Positions 27,278-43,673 of a stretch of 64,000 bases of DNA are shown here, piece after piece. Under the pieces are notes generated by a model. It was given only the letters and a program-made list of their open reading frames with translations. It was not told the origin of the DNA and did not search any database. The stretch lies in the sequence record OR770614.1; one strand, written 5' to 3'. The position numbers and the translations under genes are program-made. The first letter of the stretch is position 1; every line of letters begins with the position of its first letter.

Positions 27278-30193
27278 TTAAATTGAACAAGATTCACATT
27301 CAACAATACCTTGAGAGTTTTCATCATGGTCTGGTGAATAAATACGAGTATAATACATAGATTTAATACCTTTACTATAAGCATAGTTACGTAATCTACT
27401 AATATCTCGTGTAGTTGTTTCTTTATCTAAAGAATCTTTTTTCCATTCATAAAGATCTGGATCAAGTTCATTCATTAAATAAATATTCATTGAAATACCT
27501 TGGTCTACATGATATTGAGCTTCTGAATATAAATCAATCATATCTCTCATATCTAATTGATAAGCATTTTTCTTAAAGTATTCAAAGTTTTCAGGATTAA
27601 TACCTGGTGCTGGATAGAAAGTAGTACCTGTTTTACCTTCAACACGTTCTTCAATTAATTCTACAATAGGATGAATAGAAGGTGACACTTCTCTAACATA
27701 ACCAATAGAACCATTAGGTGCTACAGCTAATCTATTTTGATTGTATAAACCATCCATTACAATATTATTCTTCAATTGTTCCCAATCAGAATCAGATGGA
27801 ATAAAGATATCTTCAAATAATTCTTTAACTTTTTCCGTACGTGGTTGAATATTTTTACCAATATAACGTTTATCAAAGTAAGAACCATCAGCATATTCAG
27901 TTTTTTCAAATAAATAGAATGATTCATCTTTTTCTTTAGCAATTTTATTTGATTCAAATAATGTCCAATAGTTTAATAACATGAAATAAATATTAGTGAA
28001 ATCTTTAGATTCTTCTGATCCATATTGAATATGATTTTCAGCTAAATAAGTGTGTAATCCCATTGCACCTAAACCAACTGTATGGAATAAATCATTAGCT
28101 TTTTTAACTGTAGGTACAGCTTCAATATTAGATTTTTCTGCTACTGAATTTAAACTTCTTAACATAGTCCCAACTGATTTACCAAAGTCTTCTGATTTCA
28201 TTAAACCAGGTACAATAGTTGAAGCTAAGTTACATGAAACATCTGTTCCTGTTTTAACGTATTGTTGATTATCGTCAACTAATGAAGGGTATTGTACTTG
28301 TAAAATTTCACTACATAAGTTACTCATTTTAATTGTACCATGACTAATTGGATTAGCTCTATTAGCAGTATCAATATTAATGATATAAGGATAACCAGAC
28401 TCTTGTTGTAATTTACTAATAGTAGTTTCTAAATCACGAGCATACATTTTTTCTTTACCAATACGTTTATCATCTACAAAGATATCATAGTAAGTATTAA
28501 AGTCAATACTATCGAAATCTAAATCATAATATTTTTTAATATCATATGGACTAAATGTATATAATGATTTATTTTCTTTAACTAGTTGATAATATTTATC
28601 TGGAACTGTTAAACCTAATGAAATAGTTTTTAATCTTACTTTTTCATCAGCATTTTCTTTCTTAGTATCTAAGAATTTTATTATATCTTTATGGAAAATG
28701 TTTAAGTAAAGTGCACCTGCACCATTTCTCTGCATTTATGTTAACTGTATTAATGTAATACAGATCAGACTATGTCTTATTATTCTTCTCTAATTCATAA
28801 TGGCATTTTTTACAAACTGTAATAACATTTTCATCATAATGTGCTTCATTAGGATCATTAAATTTTATTATAGGTATAATATGATGTATTTCTAAGTTTT
28901 CTTTAGAATTACAGTTAGTACACATATAATTATCTCTTTTCATGATCTCTTTTCTACGTCTTCTATAAGTTCCACCGTATCTTGTTGGATTTTCTTTAGA
29001 ATAAGTATAATTGGCACATCTATCAGAACAAAAGTATCTCTCTTTATTATTAGCAAAAGTTAAAGAAGGTCTAGAGAATGTTTTATTACAAGTAAAACAT
29101 TTTTCTTTTCTTAATTTTCTTTTAGCTATAACAGAAGCACATTTTTTTGAACAACTGTCAGATTCTTTATGAGATGTTCTAAATTCATTATTACAAATAG
29201 TACAAATTTTTAAATAACGTCTATTTTTACAATTTTGAGAACAATATACTTTAGATTTATATTTTGTTTCAAAATTCTTACTACAAACAGGACATTTTTT
29301 ATTTTCCATTATTATCACCTCAAATCATTATTTGAGAAGAATAATTAATATATTTAGTCGTTGAACAACTTTTTTAAGTTGATGCTAATTGGTTTAATAG
29401 AAACGTCTTAGCAATTAATATTATTTTTATTGAGCCATTAAAATTAACCCAATTGATTTACATATGATAAAGTATCTTCAAATACTTTCATAACTGGAAC
29501 TACTCCTGAAGCAGCACCTTCAACGCCTTTAATTGGATCATTGTCAGCACGTAAATTACTTAAAGATACTCCAATTCCTCCACCACGTTTACTTAATTGA
29601 GCAACGTTAGAAATATTTCTATAGATAGATGATAAAGAATCTTCCATAGTTAATAAGAAACAACTTACCAATTCTCCAGAACGTACTCTACCTGCATTAA
29701 GGAATGTAGGTGTAGCAGGTTGAAAAGTGCCTGTAATAATTTCATTAGCAATATTTCTAGCTAATTCTTCATCCCCATCAGCTAAATATAGAGCAACAAA
29801 TAAAATTCTATCTTCATATAATTCTAATAAAATTTCTCCTGCATCATCTTTCATTGCATACTGTTCATAGAATTTTTTAGCACCTAATAAACGAGTGAAT
29901 CTATGTTTATAAGCCATTAATTCTTTCATTAATCCTTTAATAAATTCAAAATCATAATTTTTGATCATATCTACATCAATATAATCATTATCGACTAAAT
30001 AGTTAATTTTTTCTTTATATGTTTTAAAGTATCTTACATTTTTATTTACATTATCTAAAAAGTATTTTTTAACTGAAGCTAATTCAAATTCTAAATCTAA
30101 ATTGCCATCTTTTAATTGTGAACCTCTTGAATTCAATTCATTGTATGAATAATCTTTAAACTTTTCTGAAGTTAAATCTATTTCTTTTGGCAT
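27278..30193 (-). CDS. nrdE: ribonucleotide reductase class Ib alpha subunit, split by a group I intron (exons 30193-29447 and 28732-27278; 733 aa spliced)
   Basis: PATPTFLNAGR, SCFL, NLCSEI, APNGS and C-terminal CESCSI; splicing restores the conserved NQLG|QR. Confidence 0.95.
28733..29446 (-). mobile_element. group I intron in nrdE (714 nt) with an HNH gene in L8
   Basis: P1 UUGGGU/GCUCAA with U.G; P AAUUGCU, Q AAUUAGCAUC, R GUUCAACGACUA, S AAGACAUAGUCU; ends in AAAUG; an 11-bp P8 (28780-28790 / 29334-29344) flanks the ORF. Confidence 0.92.
28770..29309 (-). CDS. intron-encoded HNH homing endonuclease with three N-terminal Cys4 zinc-finger repeats
   Basis: CxxC...CSxxC x3, then CTNC...LEIHH...N...CKKCH; GAGGTG RBS before MENKK. 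Confidence 0.9.
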   Translation of the reverse strand: MENKKCPVCSKNFETKYKSKVYCSQNCKNRRYLKICTICNNEFRTSHKESDSCSKKCASVIAKRKLRKEKCFTCNKTFSRPSLTFANNKERYFCSDRCANYTYSKENPTRYGGTYRRRRKEIMKRDNYMCTNCNSKENLEIHHIIPIIKFNDPNEAHYDENVITVCKKCHYELEKNNKT

Positions 30194-32957: not shown

Positions 32958-35900
32958 TTATTTGAATAAATCCATAATACGTTTATTATTGTTATCTATT
33001 GGTTTTTGTTGTTGACCAAATATAGAATTACTCATATCATTTCCTTCAATAACACTATTGATACGTTTAATTGAAGCAATATCTTTTCTTCTAGCTTCCT
33101 GTTCTTTTTTCATTCCTTCTGCATTTTCACTGTTAGGTGAGAGTTTAGAACCATATTTAACTTTTACAAATTTATTAATATCCTTTTCATAATAATATGC
33201 ATATAAACAGAATAAATAAGACATCATTAAGTCGTCATGGCCACCTGGTGGATGGTCAATACGTCCTTTAATCATTTGTAACGATTTAATTTCTTGGAAA
33301 AGTGGTTTATTATTAATTAAATGTGGTTTTTCTTCAACAAGCATAGATAATATTTCATTTAACATTATATCACGAGATTTTTTAGTTGTATCAATACCAT
33401 ATCTACGAGTTTCTTTTTTAACTTTTTCAGTTTTACTATATCTAGACATTTCATTAAATAAACTTTTATTTTCTACTTGCTTTTCAGCTACACGAGTTTT
33501 AAGCGTATAGAATAAATTAGATTCTAAACCATCATAAGTTATCATATGATCAATTACTGTTAAACCTGCATAGTTACGTTCAGGTATTAATATAGCGTTA
33601 GGTATATAGAAACCAACCAATTCTTTAATTAATTTTCTGAATGTAGGTCCATTAATTACATTATTTTTAAAAGTCATTACTGGTTCCAAAGTAGCTGGAT
33701 CCACTACAGTAAACGCTGTATTATCTCGTCCTAAACCACCAGACATATCAATACCAATAAGCCAATTTTTCTCTGTAATATTATCCATATATTTAATCAT
33801 ATTTACATAATAAGTTCTACCATCAATATTAAATTCAAGAGTATTATATATTTCTTTATTAGCATACATAGATATTTCAGTCATTTGTTCTTCAGAGAAT
33901 AATGAATCATCAGAACTATAAGCCCATTCCAATAATATCTCACGTTTAACTGCTTCTAAAGAACCAATTTGTCTTTTTTGTTTTTCTAACCAATCTTCAT
34001 CTTTACCTAATTCTTTATATGAATATTCTATATACATGAATTCATTATTTGAATTATCTTCCATGTATTTTTCTAATTTAGAATTTCCTTCTTCTTCACT
34101 ATCAATAAAATAATCATATATTTTTTCATTCCATTGAGCTGCTTCATTCATTTGTTGAAAGAAAAATTGCCCTTGAGATGTGTCGAGAGTTGAAGGGGTT
34201 GTGGTGATAAGGAGTCCATAGGGAGAACCGTTTTCTTTTGCAATTCTAGAAGCTGTACTTATTGCTGGTCATTTATGTTAGCTGCATGGATTATCATGCA
34301 GATCAGACTATATCATAATCTTTTTAAGATTTAATAAATTTAGTCGTTGAACATTATTTAATGATGCTGATTGGTTTTTAAACTTTTCAGCAGTTAATAT
34401 TATTCATCATCTATATTTCTATAAAGATGGAGCCTTTTTACTCATTGCTTCAAACATTACTTGATTATGTGGTATAAACGCCCACTCATCAAGCCAAACC
34501 ATAGGTCATTTACGTTAAACTGCATGGATTATCATGCAGATCAGACTATATCATAATTTTAATAATTTTTTCATAGGGATAATTAATTCTTCATTTATTC
34601 TATTCTGATAAGGGAGACGTATCATATTTATTCCTTTACTTCTTATAAATTTATCTTTTTCATTATCTAATTTTTTTATATCTTCAAGAGTTCTTGTGCG
34701 TTTATTTCTTTTATCATTAATAAAAGTTCCATAACCTTTTATATGTCCTTTTCCATCTACTTCAACTACAGTATTTATTTTTTTAAAATAAAAATCAAAT
34801 CTAAAACTAGATCCTTCAAAAGTAACTTCATTCTCATATTCTATATTATTCTCTTGAAGAAATTCAATAATGGCAATTTCTCCTATACTTTTAGAGCATA
34901 CACTACATCTTTTTCTTTTAAGTATATCATCTGGTCTTGTTTTAAATTTGTGTCCACAATCATTACTCTTCAAATAGATATAATCTTTGCTTCTAGTATA
35001 TTCAGTTAACACATTAAATTTATTATATCCAAATATCATATCTAATTCACCTTGAAACTCTTCTGTTGTCTTTTTAGATAATTCTTGACTATCTAATATG
35101 ATATAATTTTCATCATTTATACATCTATTACAGTTTACTGAATTATACTTCTTTCTTTTATCCATTAGAGTAGAAGGCTTTGCAAAATATCTTATATTTC
35201 CACATTTTCCACAACGGAATCTACACTTTTTATTCATTCCATTGAATCCTTCAATATAAGTATAATTAAATCCGAACTTATCTTTTAATTCTATTAAAAA
35301 AGTTTCTTTACCTTTAGAATTCTTGGGTTTTTCTGAATATCTACAATCTTTTCTATTACAGAATTTTCTCTTTAATCTTAATTTTTCAGTAGGTAAGAAA
35401 AAATCTCTATCACATATATTACAATGACATTTAATTGGTTCTTTAGAATTTTTATACTCTCCCAGTATTTCAAATTTATCTCCATTAATATCTTTTATTT
35501 CTTTAAAAGTTTTATTTCTCTGTTCTATGAATTTTTCTTTACTTTTAACACCTTTAGGCATTTTATCCCTCCGTTATCGTACTGATAAAAGAATGTTAAC
35601 AGTAAAAATTATTAAAATTGATTTTATTTAGTCGTTGAACACTAATTAAAGTGATGCTGATTAACTTCATTATTAGTCTTCCAGCAATTAAAAATCTTTA
35701 TGCACTGCATCTACATACGGTGCTACCTCTTCCTGCTTTGTTTGCCGTAATACATTGTATGATATTCATACACACTAGACTATATCTTATAATATTAATT
35801 ATCTCTATATTTAGTCGTTGAACAATCAATTTGATTGATGCTGATTGGTTTAGTATCTTTTTCAGCAGTTAATAGAGTTTAATGAGAGCACGTATTTTAC

Positions 35901-36531
35901 TCTCAGCATTTGTTGGAGGTGATACTGTTTTTATTGTGTTGTTATTACTTGCTAAAGAAAATTCATTAATTTTGTCTCTATCATTTTTATCACCAAAGTT
36001 AGCTAATACATAATCCGGTAAACATTTCTCTTTGAATAGATTTTTTAATCGTTTAAGGTTTTCAGTAGTGTCCGAGTACGATTTATGTGTAAATAACATT
36101 GTATAGTTATTACCTACCAATAACATAATCCATGAATAATAACATACTGCAGAATATGTTTTATAGTGCTGACGAGGTAACATTATTGCAGTATCTAAAT
36201 TATGCAACATACAAAAAGTCATAGCTAAATTACCTCTATGAAGTTCATACATTACTTTTCCACCCGGAACCGGAACTCTGATAACTTCTCTTAAATAAAA
36301 CCATATATTAAGTTTAGCTTCCCTAATAACACGTGTTTTCATTTCATTATCTAGATCTTCATCCCAAGGATCAACACCAATTAATTTCTTATCATATAGA
36401 GTTAATGGCAATCCATAATTTTGTATATTATTATCTTTAAGTTCTTTAGCAACTTTTAAAAAGCTTACATTATTAGTTTTATAATCGTAATAAATTTTTT
36501 TCTTTAATTTTGTTATAGCCATAGTCTTCAT
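32958..36531 (-). CDS. terL: terminase large subunit in four exons (36531-35899; 35745-35717; 34506-~34441; ~34269-32958; ~679 aa)
   Basis: Walker A-like LPRQHYKT, GRG motif in exon 2, Walker B VWLDE in exon 3, coupling motif ITTTP, nuclease IGIDMSGG and HDDLMM. Confidence 0.9.
34270..34439 (-). mobile_element. ORF-less group I mini-intron 3 of terL (~170 nt)
   Basis: P AACUGCUGAAA, Q AAUCAGCAUC, R GUUCAACGACUA, S AUGAUAUAGUCU, td-like P9 CUGCAUG...CAUGCAG, ends in AAAUG; the exact junction is ambiguous by 1 nt. Confidence 0.88.
34507..35716 (-). mobile_element. group I intron 2 of terL (1210 nt) with an endonuclease gene in L8
   Basis: P/Q/R elements at 35625-35685, S/P9 at 34507-34557; a perfect 16-bp P8 (35604-35619 / 34555-34570) flanks the ORF. 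Confidence 0.92.
34551..35561 (-). CDS. intron-encoded homing endonuclease: repeated zinc ribbons plus a C-terminal PD-(D/E)xK / Vsr-like domain
   Basis: Three CxxC zinc-ribbon units; SIGE...FRFDFY...VEVDGKGH; GGAGG RBS; the stop codon overlaps the intron S element. Confidence 0.85.
   Translation of the reverse strand: MPKGVKSKEKFIEQRNKTFKEIKDINGDKFEILGEYKNSKEPIKCHCNICDRDFFLPTEKLRLKRKFCNRKDCRYSEKPKNSKGKETFLIELKDKFGFNYTYIEGFNGMNKKCRFRCGKCGNIRYFAKPSTLMDKRKKYNSVNCNRCINDENYIILDSQELSKKTTEEFQGELDMIFGYNKFNVLTEYTRSKDYIYLKSNDCGHKFKTRPDDILKRKRCSVCSKSIGEIAIIEFLQENNIEYENEVTFEGSSFRFDFYFKKINTVVEVDGKGHIKGYGTFINDKRNKRTRTLEDIKKLDNEKDKFIRSKGINMIRLPYQNRINEELIIPMKKLLKL
35746..35898 (-). mobile_element. ORF-less group I mini-intron 1 of terL (153 nt)
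   Basis: P1 UGAGAGU/GCUCUCA; P, Q, R and S (AAGAUAUAGUCU) elements; terminal G; removal joins NAES to ANKAGRG in frame. Confidence 0.92.
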
Positions 36532-42486: not shown

Positions 42487-43673
42487 ATGTCTAAAGATAT
42501 TAAAGCTTACATTATTAATGAATCTAATACAACTTCTCAACCAGAAGTAGTTCAAGATAATAACAAATCAGTTAGATTCATTGCTGAATTACAAGAAGCT
42601 GATAGACAAAACCGTAATGGTCGTGTTTATCGTAAAGATGTTATACAAAGTGGATTAGATAGTCCAGTAGTACAAGAAAAATTAGCAAGAAGAACTTTTT
42701 ATGGTGAGTTTTAGGTTAAAATGGCTCACGTTAAATTATATTAATTGCTGAAATCTTATTTAAAGTAATCAGCATCAACTTAATACAAGTTGTTCAACGA
42801 CTAAATATATAACTTAATTTAATTAAGAAGATATAGTCTAATCTATATAAAATATAAATATAGATAATATAAGCAGGTCATCCTTTAAGTGATGAACCTA
42901 AACGTCAAATGTATATTGATCAACGTAATATTTCTCATATTATCACTAGAACTTGGTGGAATGGTAATAAATTAATGGGAGAAGTAGAAACAGCTCAAAC
43001 AGCAGCTGGTAAAGATATGAAAGGTTTAATTGGACAAAAGTCTGATGTATCCTTCTCAATGCGTGGTTTTAGTAAAATAGAAAGAAAACCTAATGGTGAA
43101 GTAGAAGTTACTAAACCTTTAAGATTAATCTGTTACGATAAATAACTCTGTCGCTTCTTAAAGCAATTTAAGTCGAATAATATTATTAATTGCTGAAAAG
43201 AATTCATTAAATTAATCAGCATCCTCAAAAAGAGGTTCAACGACTAAATATAATATACTTAATTTATTAAGTAATGATATAGTCTAGTCTATATGAAATT
43301 CATATAGTTAATATAAACGTGGGTAGTAATTCCATCACATCAAGATTCTTATATCCAAAATATAATTTCAGAGAATCATAATAATTACAATACTAGTGAT
43401 TTACAAATGGTTAATGAATCAATTGATATGTTTTCTAACGGTAAAGTTACAGAATTTTCTCCTAGAGAAGTTTTAACTTATATTAAAGAAAATTCAGACA
43501 ATATCAAATATATCGCTGAAGATATGGGATTTGATAAAGCTGATGAATCTAATATCATTTACGATAAAGGATCTCAATTAGCTTCAATTAAAGAAAGTAA
43601 TAAAACTATTAAAGTTTTCTTAGAAGAATCTGTTCTTAATGGACTTGATGATTTCTATAGAAACTTTAAATAA
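42487..43673 (+). CDS. prohead core protease (T4 gp21-like) in three exons (42487-42709; 42874-43139; 43320-43673; 280 aa)
   Basis: LQEAD..NRNGRVY, spliced GE-SGHP, FSMRG and YD-WVVIPSH; the exon lengths sum to a multiple of 3. Confidence 0.9.
42710..42873 (+). mobile_element. ORF-less group I mini-intron 1 of the prohead protease (164 nt)
   Basis: P1 GUGAGU/GCUCAC; AAUUGCUGAAA, AAUCAGCAUC, GUUCAACGACUA, AAGAUAUAGUCU; terminal G. Confidence 0.92.
43140..43319 (+). mobile_element. ORF-less group I mini-intron 2 of the prohead protease (180 nt)
   Basis: P1 CGAU/GUCG; the same P/Q/R/S elements; terminal G before the conserved Trp codon. Confidence 0.92.

Follow-up and report, generated by a model that had tools for sequence, protein, structure and literature searches.

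Miniature group I introns and micro-exons in the terL gene of the Staphylococcus jumbo phage vB_StaM_PB50

The closest system described so far is the terminase large subunit gene (terL) of the Bacillus jumbo phage AR9, which is annotated as a five-piece join (AR9_g121 in KU878088; Lavysh et al., 2016). We analysed the terL gene of the Staphylococcus jumbo phage vB_StaM_PB50 in a stretch of 64,000 nucleotides (nt), called the window below, which is 100% identical to OR770614.1 with the same coordinates. PB50 and phage Machias, 97.7% identical to it across the region, are AR9/PBS1-like uracil-DNA jumbo phages, and a miniature-exon terL architecture is already on record for AR9, the reference phage of this clade. 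The exon map of AR9 was rebuilt from its record and from the intact terminase large subunit (TerL) of phage Goe21, and contains internal micro-exons of 28, 44 and 84 nt. PB50 resembles AR9 in that the same gene, in the same clade, is interrupted by tandem group I introns in the stretch from Walker B to the TTT motif; AR9 and the Staphylococcus phages have two insertion sites in common, those after ..G|RG and TTTP|. However, the four AR9 introns are full-size (289-320 nt) and pass the Rfam cut-off with 70-93 bits, whereas the PB50 introns that carry no open reading frame (ORF) are 153-171 nt long, score below threshold and lack peripheral elements, and PB50 sites A, C and D (defined below) differ from the AR9 sites. 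Our conclusion is that PB50 terL is, with high probability, a single gene into which three group I introns of a miniaturised family are inserted.

Ranked by closeness, the next precedents after AR9 terL are the terL genes of the Bastillevirinae and orf142 of phage Twort. Bastillevirinae terL genes contain two or three group I introns, and cDNA analysis revealed a small exon between two of them as well as exon skipping (Weglewska et al., 2025, PMC11878797). The ORFs inside these introns, like that of PB50, encode endonucleases of the PHROG 559 / Vsr-like family but, in contrast with PB50, the introns average 802 +/- 342 nt, were found with Rfam-type models and occur in another phage family (PMC11878797). 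Twort, a Staphylococcus phage, had been named as the precedent in the initial annotation of the PB50 sequence; the parallel is valid, but the AR9 five-exon join with its 28- and 44-nt internal exons is a much closer one. As cited in PMC11878797, orf142 carries three group I introns and shows exon skipping (Landthaler and Shub, 1999); in that account it parallels PB50 terL as a single late phage gene that harbours three group I introns, self-splicing in Twort, with short exons between them, but it encodes a tail tube protein, belongs to the Herelleviridae and has larger introns. The compact group I intron of the Azoarcus pre-tRNA-Ile measures 205 nt (PMC3895272, PMC13168695). It is likewise a stripped-down core without large peripheral domains, but it is 34-78 nt longer than members of the PB50 family, has P2 and P9 tetraloop contacts and lies within a tRNA; its self-splicing is proven, whereas that of the miniature terL introns is predicted. 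The J6/7-P7-J8/7 motifs of the Azoarcus intron are of the same type as those of the miniature introns.

In GenBank, PB50 has two separate minus-strand coding sequences (CDS) named terminase large subunit, 32958-34151 and 35869-36522, with a homing endonuclease at 34551-35561 between them. In the Staphylococcus MarsHill-group phages TerL was reported to be intron-disrupted, with a mature form that 'could not be confidently reconstructed' (Korn et al., 10.1101/2020.12.14.422802), and the paper on phage DC4 states that Rfam found no introns (PMC10638138). Our reconstruction of the PB50 locus is as follows, with model R1 standing for the covariance model described below.

35899..36531, minus strand: terL exon 1, from ATG 36531, or from 36522 as in GenBank (ORF list, sequence)
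35746..35898, minus strand: intron 1 (site A), 153 nt, no ORF (Rfam, model R1, folding)
35717..35745, minus strand: terL exon 2, 29 nt, GCA..ACC GU (sequence; contiguous in intron-less S6, DC4 and SA1)
34507..35716, minus strand: intron 2 (site C), 1210 nt, with a 336-amino-acid (aa) homing endonuclease gene in P8 (model R1, Rfam, relatives)
34551..35561, minus strand: homing endonuclease gene, 336 aa, in the P8 loop of intron 2 (PHROG, Pfam, annotation)
34441..34506, minus strand: terL exon 3, 66 nt, or 67 if U34440 is included (sequence; contiguous in S6, DC4, SA1 and AH12)
34270..34440, minus strand: intron 3 (site D), about 171 nt, no ORF (Rfam, model R1, folding)
32958..34269, minus strand: terL exon 4, (A) CCA GCA AUA..., encoding PAISTASRIAKENGSPYGLLITTTPSTLD..., the nuclease domain, up to the stop codon (reading frame)

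The initial observation that terL is cut by three tandem inserts leaving micro-exons was confirmed; sequence and ORF list gave the 29-nt GRG exon and the 66- to 67-nt Walker B exon with the coordinates and peptides first described. On the minus strand, a 220-aa ORF reads ...PPTNAES and then runs into out-of-frame residues; exon 1 closes with the AGU of this serine, U35899 being its last nucleotide. ANKAGRGSTV is found at 35745-35717 within a 43-aa ORF and (P)MVWLDEWAFIPHNQVMFEAM at 34506-34443 within a 27-aa ORF, both too short to show in a 60-aa ORF track. Exon 2 encodes ANKAGRGST and the first two bases of a V codon, and exon 3 (A CCU AUG GUU UGG CUU GAU GAG ... GCA AUG AG) encodes (V)PMVWLDEWAFIPHNQVMFEAM and the first two bases of the following codon. 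PAISTASR...ITTTP then runs in frame into a 397-aa ORF, of which the GenBank CDS covers only the part from the internal ATG 34151, that is, from inside exon 4. The three insertion points are located ahead of ANKAGRG, within the V codon that precedes PMVWLDE, and at the R codon that follows FEAM, and all three introns fall in the most conserved part of the ATPase domain.

Deleting 35746-35898, 34507-35716 and 34270-34440 generates a 676-aa protein, or the 679-aa product originally predicted if translation starts at the upstream ATG 36531. Three close relatives, S6, DC4 and SA1, have an uninterrupted 677-aa terL. Their TerL reads ...NAESANKAGRGSTVPMVWLDEWAFIPHNQTMFEAMRPAVSTAS... over the interrupted region and, in a longer reading, ...SPPTNAESANKAGRGSTVPMVWLDEWAFIPHNQTMFEAMRPAVSTAS...LLITTTPSTLD...; alignment to an intron-less TerL had been proposed as the check, and in these three proteins ANKAGRGSTV and PMVWLDEWAF are contiguous at the PB50 positions, with R at the one ambiguous residue. 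The joined PB50 TerL is 80.0% identical to that of S6 over 675 aligned residues, with no gap at any junction, a colinearity far beyond chance.

Exon 1 and exon 4 products, both colinear with S6 TerL, matched PHROG terminase families (phrog_32359, terminase large subunit, E 4e-55, for exon 1; phrog_2 and phrog_24361 for exon 4); Pfam gave no match on the separate exon products, while PHROGs and the PDB did. T4 gp17 was the only significant PDB match for TerL. The interrupted stretch aligns to its residues 239-291, including Walker B and the TTT motif (IIITTTPNGL): exon 2, the conserved RG block just ahead of the Walker B exon, aligns to residues 239-249, and exon 3, which carries Walker B and the catalytic glutamate, to residues 251-261. 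The joined protein has the composition of a T4 gp17-like terminase, with an ATPase bearing Walker B and TTT motifs and a C-terminal nuclease domain.

These alignments bear on the possibility that TerL is made as two separate polypeptides (35869-36522 and 32958-34151), the in-frame pieces between them being decaying relics. Two terminase large subunit CDS are indeed annotated alike in the records of PB50, Machias and MarsHill. However, a product of that kind would lack Walker B, the catalytic glutamate and the TTT motif, and between phages of 80% identity the micro-exons, as well as the opening 39 codons of exon 4, drift synonymously while the protein that they encode is conserved. In addition, a group I core fills every gap, and Korn et al. 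call the gene intron-disrupted. We consider it very improbable that TerL is produced in two pieces.

The assignment to group I rests on several comparisons. An Rfam scan of the whole window at the gathering score gave no match. The gathering score of the group I model RF00028 is 50 bits, and none of the three introns reached it; in E-value mode, in a 1.9-kb search, sub-threshold matches were obtained with intron 3 (34.8 bits, E 1e-6), intron 1 (25.3 bits, E 7.5e-4) and the two halves of intron 2 (21.8 bits, E 8e-3, and 14.6 bits). The J6/7-P7 block GUUCAACGACUAAAU and the J8/7-P7' block GAUAUAGUC of the inserts align to RF00028, together with a hairpin for P9 and the terminal G; both blocks are direct repeats common to the three inserts. 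We mapped the terL interruptions of seven relatives onto the S6 coding sequence, aligned 13 ORF-less introns and built model R1 from this alignment. Model R1 scored intron 3 at 131.3 bits (34270-34422), intron 1 at 119.7 bits and the two halves of intron 2 at 74.6 and 33.2 bits, with E-values on the three inserts from 1e-27 to 1e-14.

RNAalifold recovered P4, P6, P7 and P9 from the 13-intron alignment. Among 20 family members, 97.5% of the cells in these four helices are paired and nine pairs show double changes; none of 500 shuffles reached the observed values, and sliding the partner by 1-3 columns reduced pairing to 23-48%. P3 and P1 cannot be aligned by column and were scored as duplexes; for P1 this replaced a contiguous-helix scan, for which the AT-rich RNA gave too much noise. 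Nine co-varying versions of P3 occur (for example CUCUA/UAGAG, GAAUA/UAUUC and UCUUUU/AAAAGA), with a mean energy of -3.3 kcal/mol for the two strands of one intron and +0.1 kcal/mol for mismatched partners. Guide sequences differ by site and pair with their own upstream exon, ending in U·G, at a mean of -7.4 kcal/mol compared with -3.2 kcal/mol at other sites; only two of 98 cross pairs were as good as the cognate one. P8 hairpins are present in 13 of 14 introns. When the joining regions alone were held single-stranded, folding returned P1, P3, P4, P5, P6, P8 and P9. The inserts therefore have the P3-P9 core with its P3/P7 pseudoknot, supported by covariation, and they are group I introns without P2 (except intron 3) and without P5 and P9 extensions. 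Group I cores in all three inserts and a gap-free joined protein bear out the proposal of three tandem introns made at the outset.

All 19 terL introns end in G at a boundary fixed by intron-less alleles (G35746, G34507 and G34270 in PB50), and 17 of the 19, in seven phages, combine U at -1, a 3' G and in-frame splicing. As read from the sequence, three other introns of the window conform on all three counts. Removal of the inserts as inteins, by translational bypassing, or by group II or other ribozymes was considered and has a negligible probability. No support for it was found: the many stop codons that the inserts contain in the terL frame are incompatible with inteins, gaps of 153-1210 nt are far beyond known bypass gaps, and no Rfam family besides RF00028 matched convincingly.

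Introns 1 and 2 each have a P1 helix with U·G at the splice site. In intron 1, GAGAGU (35904-35899) pairs with the internal guide sequence (IGS) GCUCUC (35889-35884); P3 is CUCUA/UAGAG and P7 is GACUA/UAGUC, P4, P6, P8 and P9 are present, P5 is almost absent, and the terminal G is at 35746. Folding of this intron recovered P1, P3, P4, P6, P7, P8 and P9, and its free folding has z = -2.5. In intron 2, GCACCGU (35723-35717) pairs with the IGS GCAGUGC (35708-35702) in a helix that contains the U·G and a single C·A mismatch. The core of intron 2 is split into a 5' half (35716-35559) and a 3' part (34563-34507, ending in the terminal G34507), and P8 can be read from the sequence as a 9-bp long-range helix (35619-35611 with 34563-34555) around the endonuclease ORF. 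Site C introns of MarsHill, LY01 and Madawaska have no ORF, measure 156-159 nt and show compensatory P1 changes: GCACCGU/GCAGUGC in PB50 becomes CUACUGU/GCAGUAG in MarsHill, with two fully compensatory pairs.

From the anatomy, the colinearity with intron-less alleles and the helix covariation we infer that the introns are self-splicing. Each intron RNA would fold into a group I core whose guide sequence forms P1 with the 4-7 nt at the end of the preceding exon; guanosine would attack the 5' splice site, and the freed exon would then attack after the terminal G of the intron. Joining of the four exons would yield an mRNA for a TerL of about 676-679 aa.

Several points weigh against this interpretation. 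All three introns are under the Rfam gathering threshold and a default scan is blank, a shortfall due to the missing peripheral helices, as the core blocks do align. Unaided self-splicing is not assured, P5 being nearly absent from intron 1 and P2 missing in most members of the family. Finally, the canonical splice sites of intron 3 used together give a frameshift, so that at least one splice site of this intron must be non-canonical or elsewhere.

Intron 3 is a mosaic: the P4-P6 region resembles that of intron 1 (80%) and the 3' part that of intron 2 (93% identity), the latter match reaching into the first three exon nucleotides, ACC. Its P1 is formed by GAGU (34443-34440) with GCUC (34433-34430), placing the wobble at U34440; the helix is longer in Machias owing to a synonymous change in the exon. 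An additional, P2-like hairpin capped by a GAAA loop (about 34428-34404) is followed by P3, P4, P5, P6, P7, P8 and P9; free folding has z = -4.3. G34270 closes the tail UAACAUAAAUG, in line with intron 2 and the nrdE intron. Using U34440 and G34270 together gives AGU ACC AGC ... UAG (junction AUGAGUACC). The R/S ambiguity noted in the initial annotation is thus real, since joining at the canonical U·G and the terminal G leaves the frame off by 1 nt. Site D, identical in PB50 and Machias, is the exception to the U(-1)/G rule among the 19 terL introns, and exon 3/intron 3 is the only boundary not fixed to the nucleotide (66 or 67 nt). Recombination between tandem copies may have produced the one-nucleotide offset. 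We listed all combinations of U at -1 and 3' G near intron 3, and a single one, involving the GAAA hairpin, is in frame without a stop.

Three in-frame solutions were compared. Cutting after G34441 and G34270 would leave a 66-nt exon 3 and an AGA (Arg) codon (junction AUGAGACC, ...FEAMR). Removal of 34440-34270 in this way restores AUGAG^ACC base for base as in S6, Arg is present in nine of nine related Staphylococcus phage TerLs, and the tail UAACAUAAAUG closes with a terminal G as in intron 2 and the nrdE intron. However, position -1 would then be a G, immediately 5' of the wobble pair in P1, whereas the other 17 terL introns and the three further introns of the window have U there; we hold this solution tentatively, at less than even probability. 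Cutting after U34440, with A34269 as the last intron nucleotide, would instead produce a 67-nt exon and an AGU (Ser) codon (junction AUGAGUCC, peptide ...FEAMSPAISTASR). It agrees with the wobble set by the GAGU/GCUC helix and with the synonymous change that extends this helix in Machias, and the residue is not universal, being Ala in the Bacillus phage Goe21 and Gln in T4 gp17; but the intron would end in A despite a G one nucleotide upstream, and its guanosine-binding helix P7 is identical to that of the other introns. This solution is unlikely.

The third solution takes the GAAA hairpin as P1, with cuts after U34423 and G34270, an 84-nt exon and a 153-nt intron. The product would read FEAM-SKKAPSL-PAIS, 6 aa longer, the 18-nt AGUAAAAAGGCUCCAUCUUU-type extension being a piece of a former host exon carried along by ectopic transposition. 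Both splice-site rules are satisfied with the frame kept, the full-length covariance-model match covers exactly 34270-34422, a length equal to that of intron 1, and most family members lack P2 and have P1 abutting P3. On the other hand, the helix register needed is at +0.7 kcal/mol, compared with -6.6 kcal/mol for the out-of-frame register, whose wobble lies one nucleotide earlier, and the insertion is present in no relative. No donor gene was found either: an exact 24-mer search in IMG/VR gave 0 matches, and blastn against phages returned only PB50 and Machias. We regard the hairpin solution as somewhat less probable still. The remainder of the probability falls to a mostly frameshifted product or to something not considered.

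The 29-nt exon 2 had been proposed to serve both introns that flank it. Its last 7 nt, GCACCGU, are indeed the P1 partner of intron 2 (exon nucleotides 23-29), but with intron 1 it forms a P10 of at most 2 bp, although nucleotides 1-6 could be used. As the P1 and P10 pairings on exon 2 do not compete, base pairing imposes no order of splicing, and the ordered pathway that this exon had been thought to imply does not follow from the sequence. Similarly, on the 14-nt exon of MarsHill a 6-bp P10 (CGUGGU with AUCAUG) and a 7-bp P1 abut without overlapping. Two ribozyme cores separated by 14-29 nt could plausibly hinder each other sterically. The near-identity of the 3' ends of introns 2 and 3 makes exon skipping a real risk; skipping of a 66-nt exon 3, as obtained with the Arg junction, would keep the frame and give a TerL lacking Walker B.

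The endonuclease encoded in intron 2 is annotated as a homing endonuclease in both PB50 and Machias. It has treble-clef zinc-finger repeats (the Pfam DUF4379 treble clef match is weak) and a C-terminal Vsr-like nuclease domain, and matches PHROG 559 ('HNH endonuclease', E 2e-37) and phrog_9084 ('homing endonuclease'). GGAGGG precedes its ATG by 7 nt, and its last codons overlap the 3' strand of P8 and J8/7. Presence/absence polymorphism, typical of mobile introns, was observed at six terL sites among close relatives; site C is occupied in five of ten phages and empty in the other five. An endonuclease ORF in a peripheral loop and polymorphism at a conserved site suggest that intron 2 is a mobile intron. 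Its endonuclease would probably drive spread into intron-less terL alleles during co-infections, and the two ORF-less introns are likely to be passengers or relics of intron 2. The exon flank of site C also differs: compared at 34503-34506 with sequences L010, L005 and L009, intron alleles read GU|A CCU AUG (GU|ACCUAUGG) and intron-less alleles GUU CCA AUG (GUUCCAAUGG). Such silent differences are expected for co-conversion tracts or endonuclease-resistant target variants.

The 19 terL introns occupy six sites in the seven phages, all within nucleotides 627-798 of the S6 coding sequence (171 nt):

Site A, after S6 coding nucleotide 627, after NAES: PB50, Machias
Site B, after S6 coding nucleotide 642, after ANKAG: AH12, MarsHill, LY01, Madawaska
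Site C, after S6 coding nucleotide 656, inside the V codon: PB50, Machias, MarsHill, LY01, Madawaska
Site D, after S6 coding nucleotide 721, in the R codon: PB50, Machias
Site D', after S6 coding nucleotide 726, after RP: MarsHill, LY01
Site E, after S6 coding nucleotide 798, after TTTP: Machias, AH12, PALS_2, LY01

In the related phages ORF-less introns measure 127-206 nt, the 127-nt form being the site B intron of MarsHill and LY01, which has no P9. A 14-nt micro-exon (CGUGGUUCUACUGU or AGAGGUAGUACUGU) lies between sites B and C in MarsHill (L004:4092-4105), LY01 (L007:3939-3952) and Madawaska (L008:4935-4948).

These observations correct the terL annotation of PB50, and the same logic applies to Machias, MarsHill, Madawaska, AH12, LY01 and PALS_2. 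Default Rfam scans miss the whole miniature-intron family in uracil-DNA jumbo phages. Six sites in the 171-nt segment from Walker B to TTT make an unusually dense intron hot spot. The same observations yield naturally occurring minimal group I cores, as well as a junction at odds with textbook splice-site rules. Two points deserve attention: the third junction, which is non-canonical, and the size of the introns, well below that of the compact Azoarcus intron (205 nt; PMC3895272). It is conceivable, though on balance doubtful, that these introns, which at 127-171 nt lack P2, keep a vestigial P5 and as the 127-nt form are also devoid of P9, are the smallest functional group I introns on record, placed back to back across 14-29-nt exons, with intron 3 of PB50 and Machias spliced non-canonically (G at -1 or A last) or mostly into a frameshifted mRNA with a minor in-frame product. 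If so, a phage or host factor would have to compensate for the missing RNA domains and, were most of the mRNA frameshifted, splicing would act as a throttle on TerL production.

Other features of the relatives were noted. At site E a fourth terL intron of about 1.5 kb with a 366-aa ORF is present in Machias (L002:2295-3818) and PALS_2 (L006:3634-5144); its 3' end resembles the full-size AR9 introns and not the miniature family, and the miniature-intron model misses it. The LY01 terL (L007:732-1880) has a further interruption in its 3' half, beside a CDS annotated 'mobile element protein', and after removal of the four upstream introns its product stops at 545 aa. In the Madawaska site B intron (L008:4949-6201) the endonuclease ORF lies 5' of a complete core, in the P1 loop; the AH12 site B intron (L003:2607-2812) carries at the same place an 80-nt insert, possibly an ORF remnant. 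The P9 hairpin loops of introns 2 and 3 (34526-34538 and 34288-34300) are AUAAUC in PB50 and GAUUAU in Machias, with unchanged stems; in both introns the loop seems to have undergone a small flip inversion between the arms of a perfect inverted repeat.

The miniature-intron family also interrupts two other genes of the window. At 42487-43673 (plus strand), a three-exon gene contains two miniature group I introns, at about 42710-42876 and about 43140-43319, both with U at -1 and G as the last nucleotide, and with junctions that keep the frame; one of its guide sequences, GGCUCAC, targets GUGAGU, in a pairing similar to P1 of terL introns 1 and 3. By its position and the list of Korn et al., this gene is probably the prohead protease/scaffold gene. 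In the second gene, at 27278-30193 (minus strand), the junction ...NQLG|QRNGAG is canonical.

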